Origin: Phaeosaccion multiseriatum | Taxonomy: Eukaryota > Protista > Ochrophyta, other classes | Assembly: GCA_965112735.1 (NCBI GenBank) | Contig: OZ218951.1 | Coordinates: 4,278,001 to 4,342,000 of the forward strand | DNA: 64,000 nt | Reading direction: 5' to 3' | In this document: positions 20,285 to 33,360 of the stretch, in pieces | How the letters are laid out: every line of letters starts with the position of its first letter | Numbering within the stretch: position 1 is the first letter of the stretch | Notes under the pieces: generated by a model | What the model was told of the DNA's origin: nothing | What the model saw: only the letters and a program-made list of their open reading frames with translations | Databases searched by the model: none | Program-made: the position numbers and the translations under genes

Positions 20285-20467
20285 GCTACGCTTACGCCAT
20301 TTAAATAGATCGGATCAGGCAGCGAAGAAGGTGTTGTACCTCTGCATCCAGCCTTGGTTACAGATGACAACTCGTCACTCCTCTTCTTTTCTCAAAAGTC
20401 AATAAATACCCTCATTTTCCTCCGCGATCATTTTCTTCCATCGAGACAGCGTGTACAACCGCAGCCC

Positions 20468-21901
20468 ATGGGTAGGCAGAGGGGAAAGAAGGCCGCGGAG
20501 GCAGCATCCGCCCTGGCAGCTGAGGCCGCTGCAGCTGCAGCAGCTGCAAGAAGTAACTGGTCGCCGTTTGCGAAGGCCACGGTGGCATGGGGTTACACAG
20601 TCATGGTGTACGCAATAGTGGTTGCGGTGTGGCGGGTGTACCACGGCGAGGCCGTCTTGCTCGATGTGGTGGCCTGGAAGCGAGCCATGTTCGCCCTTGT
20701 GTTCGTGGAGGCCACGAAGTACTTGGCGACAAACGAATCGAGCATGGAGGGGTGGGCGGAGGTTCTGTACGGCATCATTTGTGTGTTCATTGGCGTGCTT
20801 GCTGCCAACACGTACAACCGCCTCATTCGCGGCAACTCACACAAGCAGACGAGCATGGAGGGCAAGGTGGTGCTTGTGACAGGGGCGAACTCGGGCATTG
20901 GGCTGGAGACGGCGAAGGAGTTGATGCGCATGGGCGCCTACGTGGTCTTCGCGTGCCGCACGGAGGAGAAGGCTCGGGAGGCCATCCTGGGGGCCATCAA
21001 GGAGCTCAAGCAGGAGATTCAAAAGGTCGGGGTGAAGAGCGGCCCCACCGACGACAGGCCTTCTGCCAAGGGAGTGGGCATCTTTATGAAGCTGGACATG
21101 TCCGACCTCGACAGTGTGCGAGCATTTGCGCAGGAGCTCAACTCGCAGCAGCACCTCAAGATTGACGTGCTCGTCCTCAACGCAGGGCTGATTGGGGGCT
21201 CCCGCCGGGAGGAGAGTGCTGCAGATGGCTTGGAGACGACCATCGGAGTGAACCACCTTGCCCACTTCCTGCTCACCAACTTGCTCCTCAACAAGATGGA
21301 GAGTAGCACCGACCCTCGCGTGGTGGTGGTATCCTCGGTGTACCACAAATACGGCAAGATAGACTGGGACGACCTCCTCATGAAGCAGAACTGGAGCGCC
21401 TTCCGCGCATACTGCAGCTCCAAGCTTATGAATGTCATGTTCGCCACAGAGCTCCAGCGCCGACTCGACCTTGGCAACAAATTCGACAACAAGGAGGGCA
21501 ACACCAGCAGCGGCAATGGGAGCAGCAACGGGAGCAGCAGCAGCGGCCGCAGCTCGGGCAGCAGGCTGTGGAAGGGCACCAACAGATGCATAGTCCACTC
21601 TGTGCACCCGGGGCTGGTCATGACAAGCATCACCAAAAACATGAACCCGGTGCTACGGTTCGGGTATTGGCTCGTCACTCCCCTCATGCTGCTGCTGCAG
21701 AAGAGGCCCAAGCAGGGGGCTTATGGGGTGGTGCACTGTACCACCAACGCGGAGCTCAGGGAGGTCGGGCACGGCGGATTGTTCTTTAGCAATCTCCTCC
21801 CCATGCCGATGCATGAGATGTGCGAAGATGAGGAGGCGTGTGCGAGGCTGTGGGACGCGTCGGCGGCGCTGGTGGGCCTCGAGGGTAAGAAAAAGTCATA
21901 A
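20468..21901 (+). CDS. Membrane-anchored short-chain dehydrogenase/reductase (retinol dehydrogenase/WWOX-like), intronless
   Basis: VTGANSGIG, VLNAG, NHLAHFLL, VVVVSS, YCSSK (YxxxK) and HPGLV motifs; N-terminal hydrophobic helices. Confidence 0.92.
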   Translation: MGRQRGKKAAEAASALAAEAAAAAAAARSNWSPFAKATVAWGYTVMVYAIVVAVWRVYHGEAVLLDVVAWKRAMFALVFVEATKYLATNESSMEGWAEVLYGIICVFIGVLAANTYNRLIRGNSHKQTSMEGKVVLVTGANSGIGLETAKELMRMGAYVVFACRTEEKAREAILGAIKELKQEIQKVGVKSGPTDDRPSAKGVGIFMKLDMSDLDSVRAFAQELNSQQHLKIDVLVLNAGLIGGSRREESAADGLETTIGVNHLAHFLLTNLLLNKMESSTDPRVVVVSSVYHKYGKIDWDDLLMKQNWSAFRAYCSSKLMNVMFATELQRRLDLGNKFDNKEGNTSSGNGSSNGSSSSGRSSGSRLWKGTNRCIVHSVHPGLVMTSITKNMNPVLRFGYWLVTPLMLLLQKRPKQGAYGVVHCTTNAELREVGHGGLFFSNLLPMPMHEMCEDEEACARLWDASAALVGLEGKKKS

Positions 21902-23563: not shown

Positions 23564-26500
23564 TTAAATGTACGTCCCGGTTACCGCGAGAGCGCTTTTC
23601 TCCTTCCCGTTCCCGGTGCCGTTACGTGTCCGGCCGTGTCCGTTGGCGGGGCGTCCGTCTGACAAGTTGTAATCATCGGCGTCGTCGTAGCGCTTCCCCC
23701 ATGATGCGACTTTGGCCTCCTCCCCTGCGTCCTTGTTGTTGCCCATGAACTCGCTCTTGCTTCTTCGTTGAGCCTTCGCCGAGGGGTTGAAGGCTGAAGG
23801 TCGTGACAGAGACAAGGGAGAGAGAGACAGAGAACAGAGAGACAGAGAGGCAGAGAGAGAGAGAGAGAGAGAAGGCAGAAGGGAGCGGTTTTGGTTTTGG
23901 TGTCAAGGCGTAAGGCTTGGTGAGCGGGCGGGGAATCTCATCACCGTCAAAACAAACAAACAAACAAACAAAGATATCAAAGAACAATGTATTATCCATC
24001 CACTGCCAACCTCCACCCACAGCCACCGCAGCCACCACAGCCTCAAGTCAAACTCCCCACATCACACCACCCACACCCCCTACCCGGCGGGCGGCGAATG
24101 GGCTGCGTCCTGCGCGGTCCCGCCTGTGCTTGCGGCGACTTGTGGCCAGCGCCACCCCAGTGATGCACGGGGTTGACAGCTGTATCACTAACCGCTGTAC
24201 CACCAACCGGTGATGCGAGTGCTACTGCTGCCGGTGTGGATATCCCTGCGTTGCCATTGGCGTCGCCGCTGGAAGGGCTGAGGCCAAAGGGGTGTTGCTG
24301 GCGGTGGATGTTGTGGTTAGAGCGCTGTGTGGTTGGGGAGCCAGGTCCTCGTCCTTCGCGCACCCACTCTCCTTTGATGCGGTCCTTCGCTCAAACGAGC
24401 AGAGAGCAGACAGCAGAAGAGAGAGGAGAGGTGGATGGGAGGGAGGGAGAGTGGGTGGGTGGATAAGTGCATGGGTGAGTGAGGGGGTGGTGGATGGAGC
24501 GAGGCAACAACAACAACAACAACAACAACCCACAAAGATTACGTATGTCTGAGAGAATGGGATGGGGGACGAAAAGGCGTGTCCTGCTTCATCAACGGAC
24601 GAGGAGGATGAGCAACACGAAGGAGGCTCGGGTTTGGCTGCTTGTTTGGGGACGTGTGTCATTCCTATTACGGGTGTTATTGTGTTCTTGCCTCGACTCA
24701 CCTTGTCTCTCACGTCGCGGCAAATGACCAGCAAGGCCAACGCTGTGAAGAACAGGGGGATCGCACTAAGCGTGGCCCCCAGCGCCACCACCCACAGACC
24801 CGTGGTGCTTCTCTCGCACACCTGTGTGCAGACATAACACAGGCAGCGGGATGAGGATCCGAAGGCGGATGAAGGGAGTGAGGGAACACATAATACTTAT
24901 CGTAACGTACAACAGCACACCCCTAACACACACGCACACAAACACACGGACGCACAGACGCACCGCCTCGTTGATGATGGAGTCGAAGTAGGGGTTGACA
25001 ATGTCGCAGCTCAGGGACTCCCCCGCAGCATTACTCTCCACAATGATGCCATCGAGGTTGTTGCGAAGGGCAGTAAGGTCATCCACATGGGCAGGACACT
25101 CCCGAGTAAATTCCTCCGTGTCCACCTCATACGCCAGCAGCCGGCTCGTCTCCAAGAATATGCCGCCGACAAGCAGCTCCTCTCCCCAACTGGGGAGTGT
25201 CTCGCACGTGCTGTAGTAACGTGCCGTTTCGCGTGCCGCTTCGCCGCTCAATGCCTCGACAATGTTGCGTGTTGGGGCGATACAAAAGTCGGAAAAGTAA
25301 AGCAGGCCCACCACTGCCCCTGCCATCAGCGCCCACACTACCATCAGCATGAGTACAGTCAGTAACAAAAGCAGCGAGAGCCACAAGCAGTGGCCCCAGC
25401 TCCCGGTGTTGGGCATCTCCCCCTTCCAAAAGACACCCAAGTCGACACTCCTTGGGCGACTTTGACCAGCCACGGCTGCCGAAGGTACTGACACCCTTCC
25501 CGTGCCGGGGGCCGGCGATCGTCGAGTATGTCTGCTGGGGTCAACGAGCACCTTGCGAGAGAAGAGAAAGAGAGAGAGAGGGACGGAGAGGTGGGGGGGG
25601 GGTGAGAGAGTGAGGGAGGCAGAAGAGAGAGTGGGGGGTAGTTAATGTCAACTGAGAGAGGAGAGGCGAGAGATGGGGAGAGAGAGGGAGTGCTAGGCGA
25701 GAGAGGAAAGGAGGGAGGGTGTGCCGGGGTCATGTTAGTACCTTTCGACCGGAGCTACGGATGTAGGCGGTTCGTTGGTTGTAAGCGGTCTGTCTCCTCT
25801 TGGCATACAGCACGCTTGCAATGTACAAGAAAGCCAAAAGGACCTGAGGGAGGGAGGGACGGAGGAGTGAGTGAGTGACTGACCAAGTTGGTAATGGGTT
25901 GTTGAGTAAGTCGTGACGTAAGTTCCGTTCAGATCAGAGGGGTTTTCGAATCGTCAACTCCCTTCCTCCTTCTCTCAATCACTCACTCACTCACCCCTAA
26001 GCAGGAGATGCCCACCATGACGACATCCCTCGGCTGCTGCGTGTCATCAATGTCCTCGAGTCCGTCATTGACATTCGTCGCCCCTTTTGCCAGGTCCTCT
26101 TCCAAAAACCCATCCAAGGACTGCGCCGTCTGCTCCATCGAATATGCAAGTTTATCAAACTCTCCTGTGAACTTGGTGCACTGGGTCTGAATGCCCTCCA
26201 GCAGGGTGCGTGACTCCGCCACGGGCCCCACCATCGCCAATGCATTGGCCTGCACAGAGAGCAAGGCACCTGTGGCGGAGTAGACATTCGCTTCAAACAC
26301 TTCATACCCATTGTCCAGGATGAGGGAGCCCCATAGAGATAAGAGCCCCCCCACAAACGCCACGGCCCCGAAGACCAGCGTGAGCACCATGAGCACGCCA
26401 GGGGACAAGAAGCAGCAGAGGTATGCAATCTTGGGCCGCTGCCCCACATACTGAATATCACCACCACTCCCACCAGCACCGCCGGGCCCCCGTTGATAAG

Positions 26501-28736
26501 ACTTGCAGCATCGGATCGGCAGCACCACAAAGATGCACAGCGCACCCACGACTAAGACGGCGACGCCGGCGTAGAGAGTGTCCTTAAAGTAGACGTCAGT
26601 GGCCTCCCACTCGTTGCCCCCGCTCAGGCGCTTCCAGCCGTTCACCTCCTTCACCACCTGCGGGTTGGTTGTTTGGATTGCGTTGGGTTGGGTTGGGGTT
26701 CGGTAAGGGCCCCAAAGAACAAACGCGACGGAAGATTACATGGATGGGTGGGGGACGGGATGGCACTTGAAGGGTGAGTGCACCAACAATGGAACGCTAC
26801 GTAATACGTCGAATGTATGTATTTGAAGATGCATGGAGTGTACGATACAGCGCCTCTCCCTCCCACCTTGTTCGGCCCGTAGACGGCGGGCTCAAAGGCC
26901 AGCGACTGCACCAGCCACTCCGGGGCCAACGGGTCCAAGCAAGTCACATCCCGACTGGGGACAGAGAAAGAGCCTGGGGGTGGGAGTATCCCAGAGTGCA
27001 AGTGGTGGTGGTAGTGGGGTCGTGTTGGTGGCAGTGTGTTGGAGTGCAGCAGTAGAGCATACACACATAGGACAGGACAGGACATTACAGGTGGAGGCGA
27101 GCTCCGAGGGGTTCTCTCGCCGACTTACTCACCCGCGCACGTGTCGTCGGTTATGTCAGCAGAGGCGCAGTACTCGGGTTGGGTCTCCCTCGCCCAACAG
27201 TTGGCATCTCCAGACGCGGATACGGCGTAGATCCACGCGAAGGTGACTCTCTCCTCTCGGAGCACTCGGTTCAGCGCAGCGTTCTCGGTAGCTGACCTCG
27301 GAGCCTTGGGGGGGGGGGAGGGTGGATGGATGGCAGTGGATGGAGGGGAAGGGGATGAGAGGGGAACCCGACAAGAACGAAAGAGGGTATTCTTCTTCAC
27401 ACGACTTTCCTTACACGTGCATGTCCATCCACACACACTCACAGATGCTCGGGAATTTACAATAGTAACATGGTTAAAAAAAAAAAAAAAATGAAACTGC
27501 CACTCACCGCGAAGCTGTAGCCTTCAGGGCAGTCGGGGGTGGTGGTGAAGACGGAGGCGCTGTCCGACAGAGTCCAGTCTGTGCTGCGGTCAGAGTCGCT
27601 GGCACAGGCGTGGTGGTACGAAGGGGAGCTGAGGAGAGTGGGGTGACGGGAGGCAGAATAAGGGGGGTGGGGGAGGGGGAGGAGGAGGAGGAGGTGGAGG
27701 AGGAGGGTGGGGGAAGAGAAGGAGGGGAAAGGCGTTCGTCAGTGAAGAGCACGCCAATAAGCCAGTGGAGCCACTAGCCTAGGCTTCTAAGCAACCTCTG
27801 TGTGGTGCTGCCTGCTGCTGCTGCTCCTCTGCTACTGGTCGTGGTGCCTACTGCCCTCTGCTGCCATCCCCCCTTTCTCCCTCCCTCCCTCCCTCCCTCC
27901 CTCCTTAACTTACCCTATCCCGCATCTGCGGTCCCTCCACCTGCTGTCCTCGATCCAAGCAAAGGCACATACTTGCTCGGACTGGTCCCCACGTGGGTAG
28001 TCATCAAACCAGGACCAAATGGTCGACTTCAGCAGGCCTGCCAGGGTGGTGAGATAGAAGATGGGCGAGAGAGAAGGAGAGAGGGAAAGACGGAGAGAAG
28101 ACAGATACCAAAAAGAGAGAAAACAGAAAGAGGGAGAGCAGACAGATACGAAAAAATAGAGATAGGAGACAGATCAGAGAGAGAGAGAGTACAGAGAGAG
28201 CAGCCCCCTACTCCATCTACTGCCCTTTTACCCGCATCCATGCTGTTGAAGGAGGGCGCATGCCGCCTCTCCTCCATCTACTGTCATCCCCATCCTCCAT
28301 CCACAGCAACCCCCCTCCATCCACTGCCATCCCCTCTTACCTGCATCCATACTATCGAAGGTGGGGCTCATGCCGCACCTCATCACGGGCTGCACTTGCC
28401 CAACACTGAGAAAGTTGTCCACAAATTCGTCCTCGAAGAGCGTTACATTGTACACAAGCAGCTCAATACGGGTAGCGTCACCTGTGGATGAGGAGAGGAG
28501 GGAGCGAGTGGGGTAGTTGGTGATACGATGCAGCGGGCGACGGAAGGGGCAGTGGAGGGAGGGCGATGAGCATTTAGACACATGGCCTGCTCAGGGAACC
28601 AAACACTACCACTACAGCAACCTCCCCATCAGTAAGGGGAACTTACCCCCCACCTGATCCCCTCCATCCAGCTCCTACTACCTCCTCCTCTCCTCTCAGC
28701 TCGAACACTCTCCCGCCCCCCCCCCCTCCCTGTCTC

Positions 28737-28779
<43 letters not shown>

Positions 28780-28797
28780 CCCTCTCTCTGTCTCTCT

Positions 28798-28837
<40 letters not shown>

Positions 28838-30897
28838 TTTCTCACTCTCTCTCTCTCCATCTCTCTTCTCTCTCCCTCTCTCTTTATCTCCTCTCCTCTC
28901 CTCTTTCTTACCCTGCACTCTGGTGAACTCCGGATTGGGCTGCGGGGTGCCGTTACAGTCACTACGCTCAAAAAATTGGGCGCCAATCGTCTCCTCCACG
29001 CCTGCGCCCATATGCCCCCCGCATGTTGGATGATCCACAAAAGCCGAATTGAGCATGAATGGGTGTGAAGAATGAGTGTGAATGGGCGGGACGGCATGTT
29101 CCAGGCAGGCGTAAGGGCACAAGGGTAGCCAAGCATATGGGAGACAGGCAGGCAGTGGTTGTGACGTACCGTCGTCAAATCTGCTAAACACCAAGGTGGA
29201 GGCAACATCGGCGAAGAAGATGAGTTGTTTGCCTGTTGGAGGGGGTCGCGTCCCATAGAGGGCACACACACACGCACACACAGAGAGAGAGATGGGAGAG
29301 AGGGGGCGGAGATGGAAGACACGAATGAGCAAAGGTGCCAAGGGTAGGGGTGGAAGACTGGCGAATGAAGGCCAACATCCCCCTCCCTGTCTGTCTGCCT
29401 GTCTATCTGCCCGTCTATTTGCCTGCCTGCCCATATGCCTGCCTACCCGTATGATACCTGCCTCTACCCTAATCTGAAGGTGCACCGACCTGACTGGAGC
29501 ATATCAGCGGGTGACGGCCATGCCCCATCCTCCCCCCTGTCCCCTGGGCCGAAGACAATTTCAGCCCCGAACACATCTCTAATGGCGTCTGAGACAAGCT
29601 CGTCCTGTCCTTCCATGAAGGAATCAAGCTTTATGAACAGCACTTCATTGACGTTGGCGCTGGAGCTCAGCCACTGCTCCACCTCCTGAAACGTCTCTGA
29701 GAGAGGGAGGAGGAGGAGGGGGGGAGAGGGGGAGAGGGTAAGACAAGAGACGCACACACAAGAGATACAAAACAGAGGGCGGGACAAGAGAACGAGACAG
29801 AGACATTGGGGGAGGGAGAGAGAGACAGAGCGAGAGCGAGAGGGAGAGACGAGAGACGAGAGAGAGAGCACCTCCTCGTCTTCCTTCTCCGTTCTTTCCT
29901 GTCCTCTACAATTGTACCCTGCCGCACACCTGTGCCCATACACCTCGATCCCTACCCGACCCTCACACCCTGCCCTCCACCCCTCCACCCCTCCAACCCA
30001 CCCCCTCACTCACTCACCCACTCACTCCCTCACTCACTCACCCGTAAGCGTTTGTGCCTTATCCACGTCGCACCCCGCCCCATTCTCGCCAAAGTCCCTC
30101 AGTCCGCAGGCCTCACACACCTCCCACCCCAGCGCCCCGCACAACTCGTCTATTTCCTGGGCCGCCTCCTGACCAGCGTGGCACACATAGGTGGTGTCGG
30201 TGGTGGTGGTGGTGTTGGTTTCCGGGTCAGTGCTGCTGATGCGCAAGAGGTGGGGGTCGAGCTCTAGTCCACGGACGCCCAGGCACTCGAGCTGAGTGGT
30301 GATGCTGTGCAGCTGTTGGGCGGAAGGGAGGTGGGGGAGGGAGGGAGGGAGGGAGAGAGGGAGGGAGGTCAGAGGGACGGTCACTTCTCGTGTGCGCTGT
30401 TTAGCTCCCCCCACCAAACTCTGGCAGGGACTTTTTAGGTCGCAAATTATGTTTGTGAGCTCGCTCACGCTTCCCTCTGTGGGCTACAACCCGAACCATA
30501 CGCACCCCAAGCAGGCGTGGGGAGGGAAGCGCGGCCCTCTGCTCGCGTCCCTCACCCAAGCAGAAATCAGTGTTCCCCAAATTAAAGGACCAGGAACGTT
30601 CTCCTCAATCTCTGGTGAATGAGAGGATCGGAGGATCAAGGTCTTTCCCTCCGCTTGCCTCCTTACCTGGTTGGGAACCTTCTCGAACACGGAGCTCGTG
30701 TCGTAATTGTTGAAGCTGTTGTGGGTCGCCACAAACGTTAACTCCGAGATCGGGATATCATAGCCAAGGTAAGCCTGCAGCGAAGTGGCCCTCAGGAGCC
30801 ACGCCGGGGAGCCTGTCTGTGCGTCTACGACAGCCACCATCATCACCACGGCCAAGGACGCTGCCCGGTGCAGCAGGAGTGCTCCCATAGTTGACAT
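23564..30897 (-). CDS. Fusion protein: signal peptide + PLC-like phosphodiesterase + C-type-lectin-like domain + Tweety five-TM domain (~16 exons)
   Basis: PLC-like: ATHNSFN...PNQ|LHSITTQLECLGVRGLELDPH. Lectin-like: IWSW...CAF...RWRDRRC...HAC...FA|APRSATENAAL...AWI. Tweety: PEWLVQ, TM1-RCC, SDFCIAP, YYSTC, LSCDIVNPYFDSIINEA|VCERSTTGL. All GT-AG junctions I checked keep the frame. Confidence 0.8.
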
Positions 30898-31230
30898 TCC
30901 CCACTAAGGCGCTTGTGGTGAGCGTGGGGGCAATAAATTCTCCTTGGAAGTTGGCCAACGGCAACAACGAAGAAGAGCGTCAGCGTCGCTCCTTTCGCGG
31001 CGATCTTGCTCTCCACATGCCGCCAAGCCTAACCCGACGCTGTGATACTTCTTTTTCTCTTGTTAAAGCTTAACTTCTCTCTCCATCATCATAACTCCTG
31101 CTCGAAGGCTGGGACAGAAGAATACAGAAATACTCCCCTTTAACAGCCCACTCTCATATACTTGTTGACTTATTCTGGTTTAATTTTTTGTTTTTTGCCA
31201 CCCCATTATTGGGCCGCCTTTTGCTTTTTC

Positions 31231-33360
31231 ATGATGGGCGCTCATTCACTCCCGCATTGCTGGGTGATCGTCTCGCTACTGCTGTTGGTGGTGGTCGTTC
31301 AGCAGCAGTATGCCCAGGCGTTCAGCTGTGGGGGAGGGATGAGAATGGGGCTGGGCGGGGTGAAGGGCTCATCGATGGTAGATCGAAGAGCGACCTTGCG
31401 CGGATTGCTCAGTGCAGGCGCTGCCTCTGCAGCAGCAGCTACAGTAGTGCTTGGCACTCCAGTCTGGGCAGAGGAGGCCAAGGAAGAGGTGACAGACAAG
31501 GTGTACATTGACTTCTCCATTGGTGCCGAGGAAGCAGGGAGGGTGGTGATTGGATTGTTTGGCAAGCAGGCGAAGGACAGCGTTCGGAACTTCCTAACGG
31601 GTGAGAGAAAGCAAAGGCTTTTGAGAGACTTAAGTTCTCCGCTTCATGACCTCTAAGGCTCTCATTCCCTGCTCAGTTGTGGAAGGCTCCTATTGCTACT
31701 CAGTAGTGTGTCCTTGCTTGATTCAATAATCGGCCCTCGTGTTTGTTTGTGATCATGCACAGTGGCTGAGGGGAAGATGACAAAAGGGGGTAACAACTAC
31801 GATCAGTCATTAGTGACCATGATTGACGAAGGGACAGGACGCATTGATCTAGGTAAGTCCCTTCTTTCGACTTCTACTAGTATTTTCTACTGAATATGAA
31901 GTATCGCCCGCTTGACCCACACAGCCCAACATATTCTTTGACACATCTCTCTCTCTCACTCTCTCTCTGTCTGTCTCTCTCTGTCTGTCTCTCTCCGGCC
32001 CGGCTGCACAGGGCGAATTCCTGCCGGCAAAGACAAGTACGAGGTGCGAAAGATTGACGCCACGGGGCGGGTGAGGAGGACGCAGAGGTGCTACGGGGAG
32101 GAGCTCGTGAGCTACGACCTGCCTCTTCTCAAGCACGACAAGGCAGGGAGGGTTTCCATTGCTAGGTATGTATGTGTTGTGTTGTTGTACTGCCTTTGAC
32201 TAGGTACAGGGGAACGAATGAACGTCTCGCAGTTGGGCTGGGCTCAGGCTCTCTCCCCTCTTTGCCCTCAATGTCAAAGTAAGCAAGCACGCAAGTATGA
32301 AGGGCGGTCTGCACCTAAATTATGCCTACTCTGTCACTCTGGCGGCCTGGCAAAACCCCCTCTTTCTCTCCATTTCTCGTCCGTCCGACTCGCTGCTGCT
32401 GACGGCTCGCACATTCTCTCTCTACCCTCTGTTACATGCACAATGAATGAATAACGGATGGATCCAAGTGGGGGAGGATCCTTCGACTTTACCATCTCAA
32501 CGGCCCCCAACCCTGCTCTGGATAAAGGCAACATGATCGTGTTTGGACAAGTCATGTCAGGCATGGACGTGCTGGACAAGCTTCTTCAAGGTAAGCAAAA
32601 GCATGCATGCATGCAAGCAAGCAAGCAAGCAATGCAAGAAAGAAAGCAATAAGGGCTTTCTCCTTTCAACTCGTCCTTGATTGTCCCTGGAGCCTTTCCG
32701 TTTACTCTCTACTCGAGTCAGTGTCAGTGGTGGTGATAAGACTTGTGTGTGGTTTTCTACCCGTCCCACCCACCCGTAGACAAGCCTTCGGTGCGAAGGT
32801 TTGTTCAGATGTCGTCATGTGACCTCACCTCGATCAACGCAGCGAATGAAGAGGAGCAGGACATGGACCCACCGCACCGCCGATAAGCACACTCCCTCCC
32901 ACTCCCTCCCGCTTTTCCTCTCTCTCTTTCTTTCGTTCTTCCTTTCTGGTGTGTTTTACGTTGTTTTTATTGGTACTTCGCTTGAACGCCTCTCTCACCC
33001 TCTCTCCTCTCTCTGCGGCCCCTCTTTTCTTTCTTGTCTCTATATCCCTCTTTTGTCTCTCTCTCTTCCCCTCTGCACCCTCTCTCTCTTATTTCCCTCT
33101 TAACTCTCTGGTCTCTTCGTCTCCTCCCTCCATCTTCTTTCCCTCCCCTCTCTCTCGTTCTCTCTCTCTCTCTGTGATTCATTTGCTTACTCTTCTGATT
33201 CTTCTGCCTCCGAACGCCAGTTGCGGTGAGCAAAGAGGATCCATTGGGCTCCAAGCAATCGTTCGCCGCAGCAGGGAGGGGATTCGACCCTCGAGCCAAG
33301 TTGGCGTCGGTTAACAAGCCGCTCATCAAGGTTACCATGGCTAAGGTAGGCAAGCTCTGA
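31231..33360 (+). CDS. Thylakoid-lumen cyclophilin-type PPIase (CYP26-2-like), 5 exons
   Basis: Signal peptide AQA-F, twin-Arg RRATL plus hydrophobic stretch ending VWA. Mature part has VTDKVYIDFSIG..GRVVIGLFG, LKHDKAGRVS, IVFGQVMSGMDVL and DPRAK...KPLIKVTMAKVGKL*. Confidence 0.85.

Follow-up and report, generated by a model that had tools for sequence, protein, structure and literature searches.

Proteins of the Tweety family have a debated function: they were first named chloride channels, and later work connected them with lipid transfer and membrane remodelling (PMC8361169, PMC12328215, PMC11405016). Structures of Tweety homologues (TTYH) show lipid-facing dimers and argue against a chloride channel role (PMC8361169), lipid transfer between TTYH2 and APOE has been described (PMC12328215), and Prom1 and Ttyh1 remodel membranes (PMC11405016). 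Tweety homologues were also reported in diatoms (PMC8273234). A second group of proteins that matters here is bacterial and combines a phospholipase C (PLC)-like barrel with a C-type-lectin-like segment. Its namesake Rv2075c is, to our knowledge, itself uncharacterised. It has been reviewed as a putative lectin (PMC6334816). Here we describe a locus on the minus strand of a 64-kb stretch of DNA from the alga Phaeosaccion multiseriatum (contig OZ218951.1; the whole stretch is called the window), where a module of the Rv2075c type and a Tweety domain are probably parts of one gene.

Overall, the data are best explained by a single nuclear gene, in a stramenopile-type alga, for a surface PLC-lectin-Tweety protein (probability roughly 0.6); a mechanism is proposed below. 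Judged by sequence, the two halves are members of known families, and our searches support the view that their pairing is a new architecture. No description of a PLC-lectin module joined to Tweety was found in the full-text literature, in a search that was far from exhaustive for eukaryotes. A profile with a first row of 820 aa (A4), which makes fusions of up to ~1,435 aa visible, was used to score 8,000 candidates; Tweety was present in none of the 43 family matches with precomputed Pfam domains (0/43), a search in which eukaryotic fusions may be missed. Within this scope the results agree with an earlier note on this DNA, whose author knew of no such architecture. If the fusion is true, it would provide independent evolutionary evidence for a lipid-handling role of the Tweety family, and the protein would lend itself to a tractable assay, in which the Tweety scaffold carries an enzymatic read-out. 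Apart from the fusion, the locus shows that an intron-rich eukaryotic gene has acquired a bacterial-type, Rv2075c-like module.

A PLC-lectin module of bacterial type in exons 1 to 9

Rv2075c-type bacterial proteins, among them those of Mycobacterium asiaticum (P0031), Alcanivorax (L073) and Oleispira (L021), share their order of motifs with the window gene. A signal peptide is followed by W..AL.LQ..L, THNS[FY]N, PNQ, QL..GVR.LELD.H and VCH, and further on by E[IV]..WL...VL..L.D, WSW..P....CA....RW.D..C, AC...W.[VL]S, C....F..PR.G.EN..L and VW. The likeness extends to exon-by-exon profile matches. In bacteria these proteins are soluble or exported; the module is either their last part or is followed by ricin-type lectin, PPC or other sugar-binding domains. 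The window copy differs in that eight introns interrupt it and a five-helix membrane domain follows.

Bacterial and archaeal genomes were searched for HNS[FY] and GVRx[LIVMF]ELD at the spacing that these motifs have in exons 1 and 2. The search matched more than 120 loci, far above the few expected by chance (hand estimate). The loci (L002-L121) fall into two groups. The larger one (GTHNSYH...Y.H.PL..QL..GVR.FELD) is found mainly in Myxococcota, Acidimicrobiia and marine archaea. The smaller one (THNS[FY]N..PNQ) is the group that the algal protein resembles, and its members are fused with ricin-type lectin, PPC, beta/gamma-crystallin or inhibitor I36 domains. The extended pattern THNS[FY]N...PNQ..S[IV]..QL..GVR.LELD.H is present in 12 loci (L005, L008, L019, L021, L038, L042, L053, L055, L073, L085, L087, L104).

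Six-frame scans with profile hidden Markov models (HMMs) covered all 1,966 pieces of the window. The HMM of 12 proteins gave four significant matches, to exons 1, 2, 3 and 7, and a wider HMM of 55 proteins matched the same exons in the same scan (E-values in Table 1). Significant matches were confined to this gene, lay on the minus strand throughout and kept the order of the profile; in the 55-protein HMM they occupy positions 17-82 (exon 1), 81-120 (exon 2), 130-202 (exon 3) and 300-337 (exon 7). The relatives had been chosen by the motifs of exons 1 and 2, and exons 3 and 7 were not used in this choice. Exons 4 to 6 did not score significantly one by one, each being too short or too divergent; their codon log-likelihood ratio (LLR, see below) was 0.38-0.42. 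Exons 8 and 9 lie in HMM order and are singly weak and not significant. By eye, their sequence (HACxS..DWTLS..CPEGYSFAAPRSATENAALN..FAWIY) fits the block AC...W.VS....C....F.VPRNG..N..L.....VWLNY of the relatives.

The nature of the family is indicated by its bacterial members. Two relatives exceed the Pfam cut-off for PI-PLC-X of 23.1 (L073 with 26.7 bits, L087 with 24.0 bits), and two exceed that for Lectin_C of 22.6 (L073 with 29.1 bits, L021 with 25.5 bits), the latter in the segment equivalent to exon 7. In a precomputed table the family carries PF26178/PF26146 and includes a 484-residue Mycobacterium protein named 'C-type lectin domain-containing protein'. By these sequence comparisons, exons 1 to 9 are homologous to the bacterial module of a PI-PLC-X-like and a C-type-lectin-like part of the Rv2075c/PF26178 type. 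The earlier note had recognised a PLC-like barrel with a lectin-like module of this kind, and the profile matches of the exons and the domain matches of the relatives bear this out.

Searches of Pfam and NCBIfam with single PLC or lectin exons gave no match (Pfam E up to 10); these exons comprise only 20-90 residues, and the Pfam scan did not list PF26178 even for the bacterial relatives. With exon 2, phmmer found nothing relevant in the PDB and a genome scan yielded no confirmed relative. A search for homologous proteins with exon 2 and with exon 11 was blank as well, which is uninformative given its length window and 5-mer word filter. An exact look-up showed that the product of the open reading frame (ORF) of exon 1 is not on record.

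The strings THNSF, GVRGLELD and VCHAG align to atHNSfn, lGVRslELD and vvCHa of the family consensus. We take the His of THNSF, the Arg/Glu/Asp cluster of GVRGLELD and the second His in VCH to be the catalytic residues of PI-PLC. Since the catalytic motifs are kept, it is plausible from the sequence that the algal ectodomain is an active phosphodiesterase. The string GVRGLELDPH, quoted in the earlier note, is present; the second catalytic His is more likely the one of the conserved VCH than that of DPH.

The hydrophobic stretch of the signal peptide in exon 1 comprises residues 3-26. In stramenopiles an aromatic residue after the cleavage site marks the bipartite plastid signal. Plastid targeting of the predicted protein was rejected, because the residue that follows the likely signal cleavage (VDA/QT) is not aromatic.

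The Tweety half and its relative in Phaeothamnion

According to hydropathy, exons 11 to 14 encode five hydrophobic segments, which we number as transmembrane segments TM1 to TM5. TM1 and TM2 are located in exon 11, TM4 in exon 13 and TM5 in exon 14, and TM3 is divided by intron 11 (..VVMVGISCLG/VLLAFLYIASVLYA..). The loop after TM1 contains five K/R versus one D/E. TTYH1-3 (PDB 7P54, 7P5C, 7P5J, 7RTT, 9G6X) also have five hydrophobic segments with the same spacing, a Cys-rich basic stretch after TM1, the block of TM4 and DFCxAP...YYxxC, and a match to Pfam Tweety.

Exon 13 alone scored 24.1 bits against Pfam Tweety (PF04906; E in Table 1), which is below the curated cut-off of 31.8. A profile of two rows (A2), made of exon 13 of the window and the corresponding exon of the alga Phaeothamnion, was compared to the PDB. 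Its seven best matches were all TTYH2, TTYH3 or TTYH1 (E 2.2e-7 to 0.018), and the alignment spans TM4 and the DFCxAP...YYxxC motif (residues 239-303 of TTYH2, E 2.2e-7). Atlas features indicate Tweety/Prominin for exons 11 and 13. The first half of the Tweety domain had no detectable sequence match among solved structures, and metagenome scans with the alignments A1 and A2 gave no confirmed relative. Taken by sequence, these matches support membership of the C-terminal half in the Tweety family; the HMM comparison, which the earlier note had proposed as a check of this identity, and the profile matches to TTYH1-3 point the same way.

In TTYH proteins the outer N-terminus is short (~40 residues) and a signal peptide is absent, whereas in the predicted protein TM1 comes only after about 510 residues that comprise the signal peptide, the enzyme, the lectin-like segment and the linker. 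Outside TM4 no sequence identity to TTYH is detectable. The earlier note had argued that the enzyme and the outer part of Tweety face the same side. This argument is consistent with the signal peptide at the N-terminus, the five hydrophobic segments and the basic loop after TM1; from these features we infer the orientation itself, in which the N-terminus would be outside and the C-terminus inside.

When 1.84 billion protein representatives were searched with exon 11, the sole similar protein was CAM9175414.1 (P0001) from the ochrophyte alga Phaeothamnion confervicola (39% identity, E 3.8e-4). As in the window, its gene continues into Tweety-type exons, one of which scores 36.7 bits against Pfam Tweety and thus lies above the cut-off of 31.8. 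The sequence YSPNG, which resembles the end of exon 10, stands directly ahead of the equivalent of exon 11. This part of the Phaeothamnion gene (YSPNG-VVADLHRWGRLSG) is continuous and intronless, whereas in the window the exon 10/11 join falls at the same position (YGPNK/VVKEVNGWKRLSG). Because Phaeothamnion reads straight across this join, exon 10 is part of the Tweety unit and requires an upstream exon.

The deposited 155-aa product, annotated as 'partial', corresponds to no more than exon 1 of a Tweety-like gene with several exons (L001, positions 1-2330 of contig CAXNAC020000328.1). Further exons with TM3 to TM5 run to ~2330 and are missing from the deposited protein. Downstream on the same contig there are genes with matches to Pfam Glyco_transf_61 and, weakly, to FUT8_N_cat.

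One gene or two

The gene model consists of 14 exons on the minus strand (30897-24702; Table 1) with a summed length of 3000 nt, which is exactly 1,000 open codons (scripted check on the raw sequence). All 13 introns are of the GT..AG type and have sizes of 142-430 nt. Splice phases agree across all 14 exons, none of which contains an in-frame stop, and the GC content at third codon positions (GC3) of the exons is 0.65-0.83. The surrounding sequence is GC-rich (~0.55-0.60), intron-bearing and eukaryotic. As the earlier note had proposed, splicing at canonical sites leads to one open frame; all strings and junctions that it quoted are found in place on the minus strand, and the linking junctions (..DDTCA + G/SFSVP and YGPNK/VVKEV) are in phase. 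The note had extended the gene to 23564. An ORF stop is present at this position, while the tail from 24700 to 23564 carries a coding-like signal without placed exon borders.

The join between the halves was assessed by the codon LLR. Each exon was left out of the training in turn, and intron windows of the length of exon 10 (n = 1,831) served for comparison. Exon 10 reached +0.388 bits/codon. The other exons scored 0.28-0.60, and all 1,831 intron windows stayed below 0.23. These values bear on the alternative that two adjacent genes were misjoined, namely a gene for a secreted PLC-lectin protein that ends with ..DDTCAGE and a stop (TAA, 27127-27125), and a separate Tweety gene that starts from the ATG at 27085 (MSCPVLCVYALLLHS..) or from an unseen upstream exon. 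The 37 codons between this ATG and the acceptor of exon 10 scored -0.525 bits/codon, which is intron-like and below every exon window, and the coding signal begins at the predicted acceptor. An alternative Met ahead of TM1 is absent from exon 10 and from the preceding part of exon 11. Stop and start of the two genes would be separated by only 37 nt, while the neighbouring genes are ~0.3-1.6 kb off. In addition, the introns that flank exon 10 have ordinary sizes and consensus sites, and the 107 nt of this exon exactly restore the frame between exon 9, which ends in phase 1, and exon 11, which starts in phase 0. Skipping of exon 10 was rejected, as it would shift the frame.

Contigs from four runs of one sample match positions 24950-27657 with zero differences, and one of them spans the junction; for this reason an assembly chimera at the junction was rejected. 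The contigs contain the introns at even depth, and therefore the four runs holding the locus represent genomic DNA. Reported 'joints' in these contigs are artefacts of repeats of 20-24 letters. Long simple repeats occur on the minus strand: intron 5 contains (GA)n/(GAGA)n (28700-28900), intron 8 contains a T-run (27470-27500), and exon 14 is followed by (TGT)n (24505-24530). These repeats gave rise to the false 'joints' and to loose ends in the placement of the contigs.

Several points weigh against a single PLC-lectin-Tweety protein. Exon 9 is the last one with homology to the bacterial-type module. With intron 9 retained, the reading frame would end at a stop codon two codons beyond the donor, and 37 codons before exon 10 there is an ATG in frame whose product would begin with hydrophobic residues. 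The runs that contain the locus are genomic, so that the support for the join is in silico, and the Tweety proteins described in the papers cited here stand alone (PMC8273234, PMC8361169). All these observations would fit two genes. Furthermore, every single exon of the window stays below the curated Pfam cut-off, and an AlphaFold2 model of exon 11 alone (two-row alignment) had a predicted local distance difference test (pLDDT) score of 46 and was unusable, with long helices predicted after TM2. A full-length relative with both halves was not found in the searches made. The Phaeothamnion contig is cut five codons before the equivalent of exon 11, so that its sequence does not reach the region of a possible PLC-lectin module. 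If there were two genes, the finding would reduce to two ordinary neighbours. We regard two genes as quite unlikely.

The stop beyond the exon 9 donor may also be read in another way: besides the full fusion, a soluble secreted PLC-lectin protein could be produced by retention of intron 9 or by polyadenylation and end at 27127-27125. The in-frame position of the stop and the coincidence of the module boundary with the end of exon 9 speak for such a second product. Donors of the GTGAGTAA type often yield such stops by chance, however, and we consider two products improbable.

Codon statistics, splice phases, intron sizes and the Phaeothamnion sequence across the exon 10/11 join all favour one gene, as the earlier note had claimed. 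Based on sequence analysis, we think it likely that both halves are spliced into a single fusion gene and are present in one chain.

Table 1. Features of the predicted fusion gene. E-values refer to window scans with the HMMs of 12 and of 55 proteins.
Feature	Position	Strand	E (12-protein HMM)	E (55-protein HMM)	Content
Exon 1	30667..30897	-	5e-10	2.6e-9	start ATG 30897; signal peptide; barrel start with THNSF and PNQ
Exon 2	30042..30312	-	1.5e-5	4.4e-5	PLC-like barrel; SITTQLE-GVRGLELD and VCH (..GVRGLELDPH..YVCHAG..)
Exon 3	29490..29696	-	6e-6	1e-8	barrel strand/helix, EVEQWL..NEVLFIKLD
Exon 4	29170..29232	-			short mid-barrel exon; fitting phase and GC3
Exon 5	28912..29001	-			short mid-barrel exon; fitting phase and GC3
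Exon 6	28341..28481	-			short mid-barrel exon; fitting phase and GC3
Exon 7	27914..28037	-	6.5e-4	7e-5	C-type-lectin-like segment begins, IWSW..P....CAF....RW.D..C
Exon 8	27508..27628	-			lectin-like segment continues
Exon 9	27133..27304	-			lectin-like segment ends, ..DDTCA + G; end of bacterial-type module
TAA stop	27125..27127	-			two codons beyond the exon 9 donor when intron 9 is unspliced; may terminate a soluble isoform or a separate upstream gene
Rival start stretch	26974..27085	-			in-frame ATG 27085 and 37 codons before the exon 10 acceptor; LLR -0.525 bits/codon
Exon 10	26867..26973	-			107-nt linker, 35 full codons, SFSVP..YGPNK; GC3 0.83, LLR +0.388
Exon 11	25995..26657	-			VVKEV..; TM1, basic loop, TM2, long helical outer region, first half of TM3
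Exon 12	25742..25843	-			second half of TM3 and basic loop
Exon 13	24964..25551	-			inner loop, TM4, DFCIAP...YYSTCE motif, outer helices; Pfam Tweety E 1.8e-5
Exon 14	24702..24821	-			TM5 (hydropathy)
Cytoplasmic C-terminal tail	23564..24701	-			coding-like codon signal at ~24400-24100 and ~23800-23564; ORF stop at 23564; exon borders not placed

Predicted protein, possible mechanism and neighbouring sequence

The predicted protein would have ~1,050-1,150 residues and consist of a cleavable signal peptide, an ectodomain of ~480 residues, a linker of 35 residues, the five-helix Tweety part with its N-terminus outward, and a cytoplasmic tail. Within the ectodomain a PI-PLC-X-like TIM-barrel phosphodiesterase with its His, Arg-Glu-Asp and His motifs would be followed by the C-type-lectin-like segment. 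Because of the signal peptide and the predicted N-out orientation of TM1, the enzyme and the lectin-like segment should be located on the same extracytoplasmic face as the outer helices of Tweety. Most economically, the protein would be a phosphodiesterase tethered to the surface, with outer-leaflet or carrier-borne inositol or glyco-phospholipids or glycosylphosphatidylinositol (GPI) anchors as substrates, and its Tweety part would not merely anchor the enzyme but present the substrate to it.

Plants have PLC-like phosphodiesterases of the At5g67130 type, whose extracellular PLC-X-like barrel contains THNSF and GVRGL.LD motifs and is tethered to the outer membrane face by a GPI anchor. We know of no lectin-like segment in these proteins. 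They resemble the predicted protein in the barrel motifs and differ from it by a GPI tether in place of a multi-pass domain.

In animals, Tweety proteins form dimers whose outer cavity is exposed to lipid. Given the fusion, the Tweety part may hold or present phospho- or glyco-inositol lipids or GPI anchors, either from the outer leaflet or borne by a carrier. The lectin-like segment might help to bind the glycan head group, and the PLC-like barrel would cut the phosphodiester bond. This mechanism of substrate presentation and cleavage is drawn by analogy, and we put it forward tentatively, at somewhat less than even odds. On the opposite side it counts that what the protein acts on, whether it is active and whether its halves cooperate is purely inferred. 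The earlier note had suggested a one-chain system that would capture, cleave and extract glyco- or inositol lipids or GPI anchors, which is a hypothesis of the same kind.

The main functional rival is again one gene, the Tweety part of which only serves as a dimerising five-helix anchor, so that an independent surface enzyme would act on external substrates without lipid hand-over. Phospholipids that are dissolved or come from prey may serve such an enzyme as a source of phosphate or inositol, or it may release GPI-anchored proteins. The bacterial relatives are secreted or exported, and joining of the same module to ricin-type lectins, PPC and F5/8-type domains suggests a portable unit; the linker encoded by exon 10 has no detectable homology. 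For mere anchoring, however, one helix or a GPI anchor would suffice, and it would be uneconomical to employ a conserved family of five-helix proteins whose outer helices are large. Moreover, the TTYHs of animals have been linked to the binding and transfer of lipids (PMC8361169, PMC12328215), and we consider a role as anchor alone somewhat unlikely.

A further extension of the presentation mechanism would make the fusion a 'Rosetta stone' for Tweety: the outer cavity of Tweety would capture or present inositol- or glyco-phospholipids or GPI anchors from the outer leaflet or from a carrier, the covalently attached lectin-guided PLC would cleave them in a one-chain machine, and lipid presentation would be ancestral to Tweety/prominin-type proteins across eukaryotes. 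We consider this wider view doubtful.

On either side of the predicted fusion gene there are open frames on the plus strand. At 20354-21901 (+), there is an intronless open frame of 515 residues that has the signature of short-chain dehydrogenases/reductases (..VVLVTGANSGIGLETAKEL..) and a hydrophobic region at its N-terminus; it is in convergent orientation to the 3' end of the predicted fusion gene. The frame at 31162-31656 (+) diverges from the start of the fusion gene, which leaves ~0.3-0.4 kb for a shared promoter region; it has a cyclophilin-like start (..KVYIDFSIGAEEAGRVVIGLFG..) and a leader with the twin-arginine-like sequence RRATLRGLL. Between 16300 and 19700 both strands contain long open frames rich in low-complexity runs of the (CA)n/(TH)n type and of poly-Ser, poly-Glu and poly-Lys. 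These frames are probably driven by microsatellites rather than representing genes.

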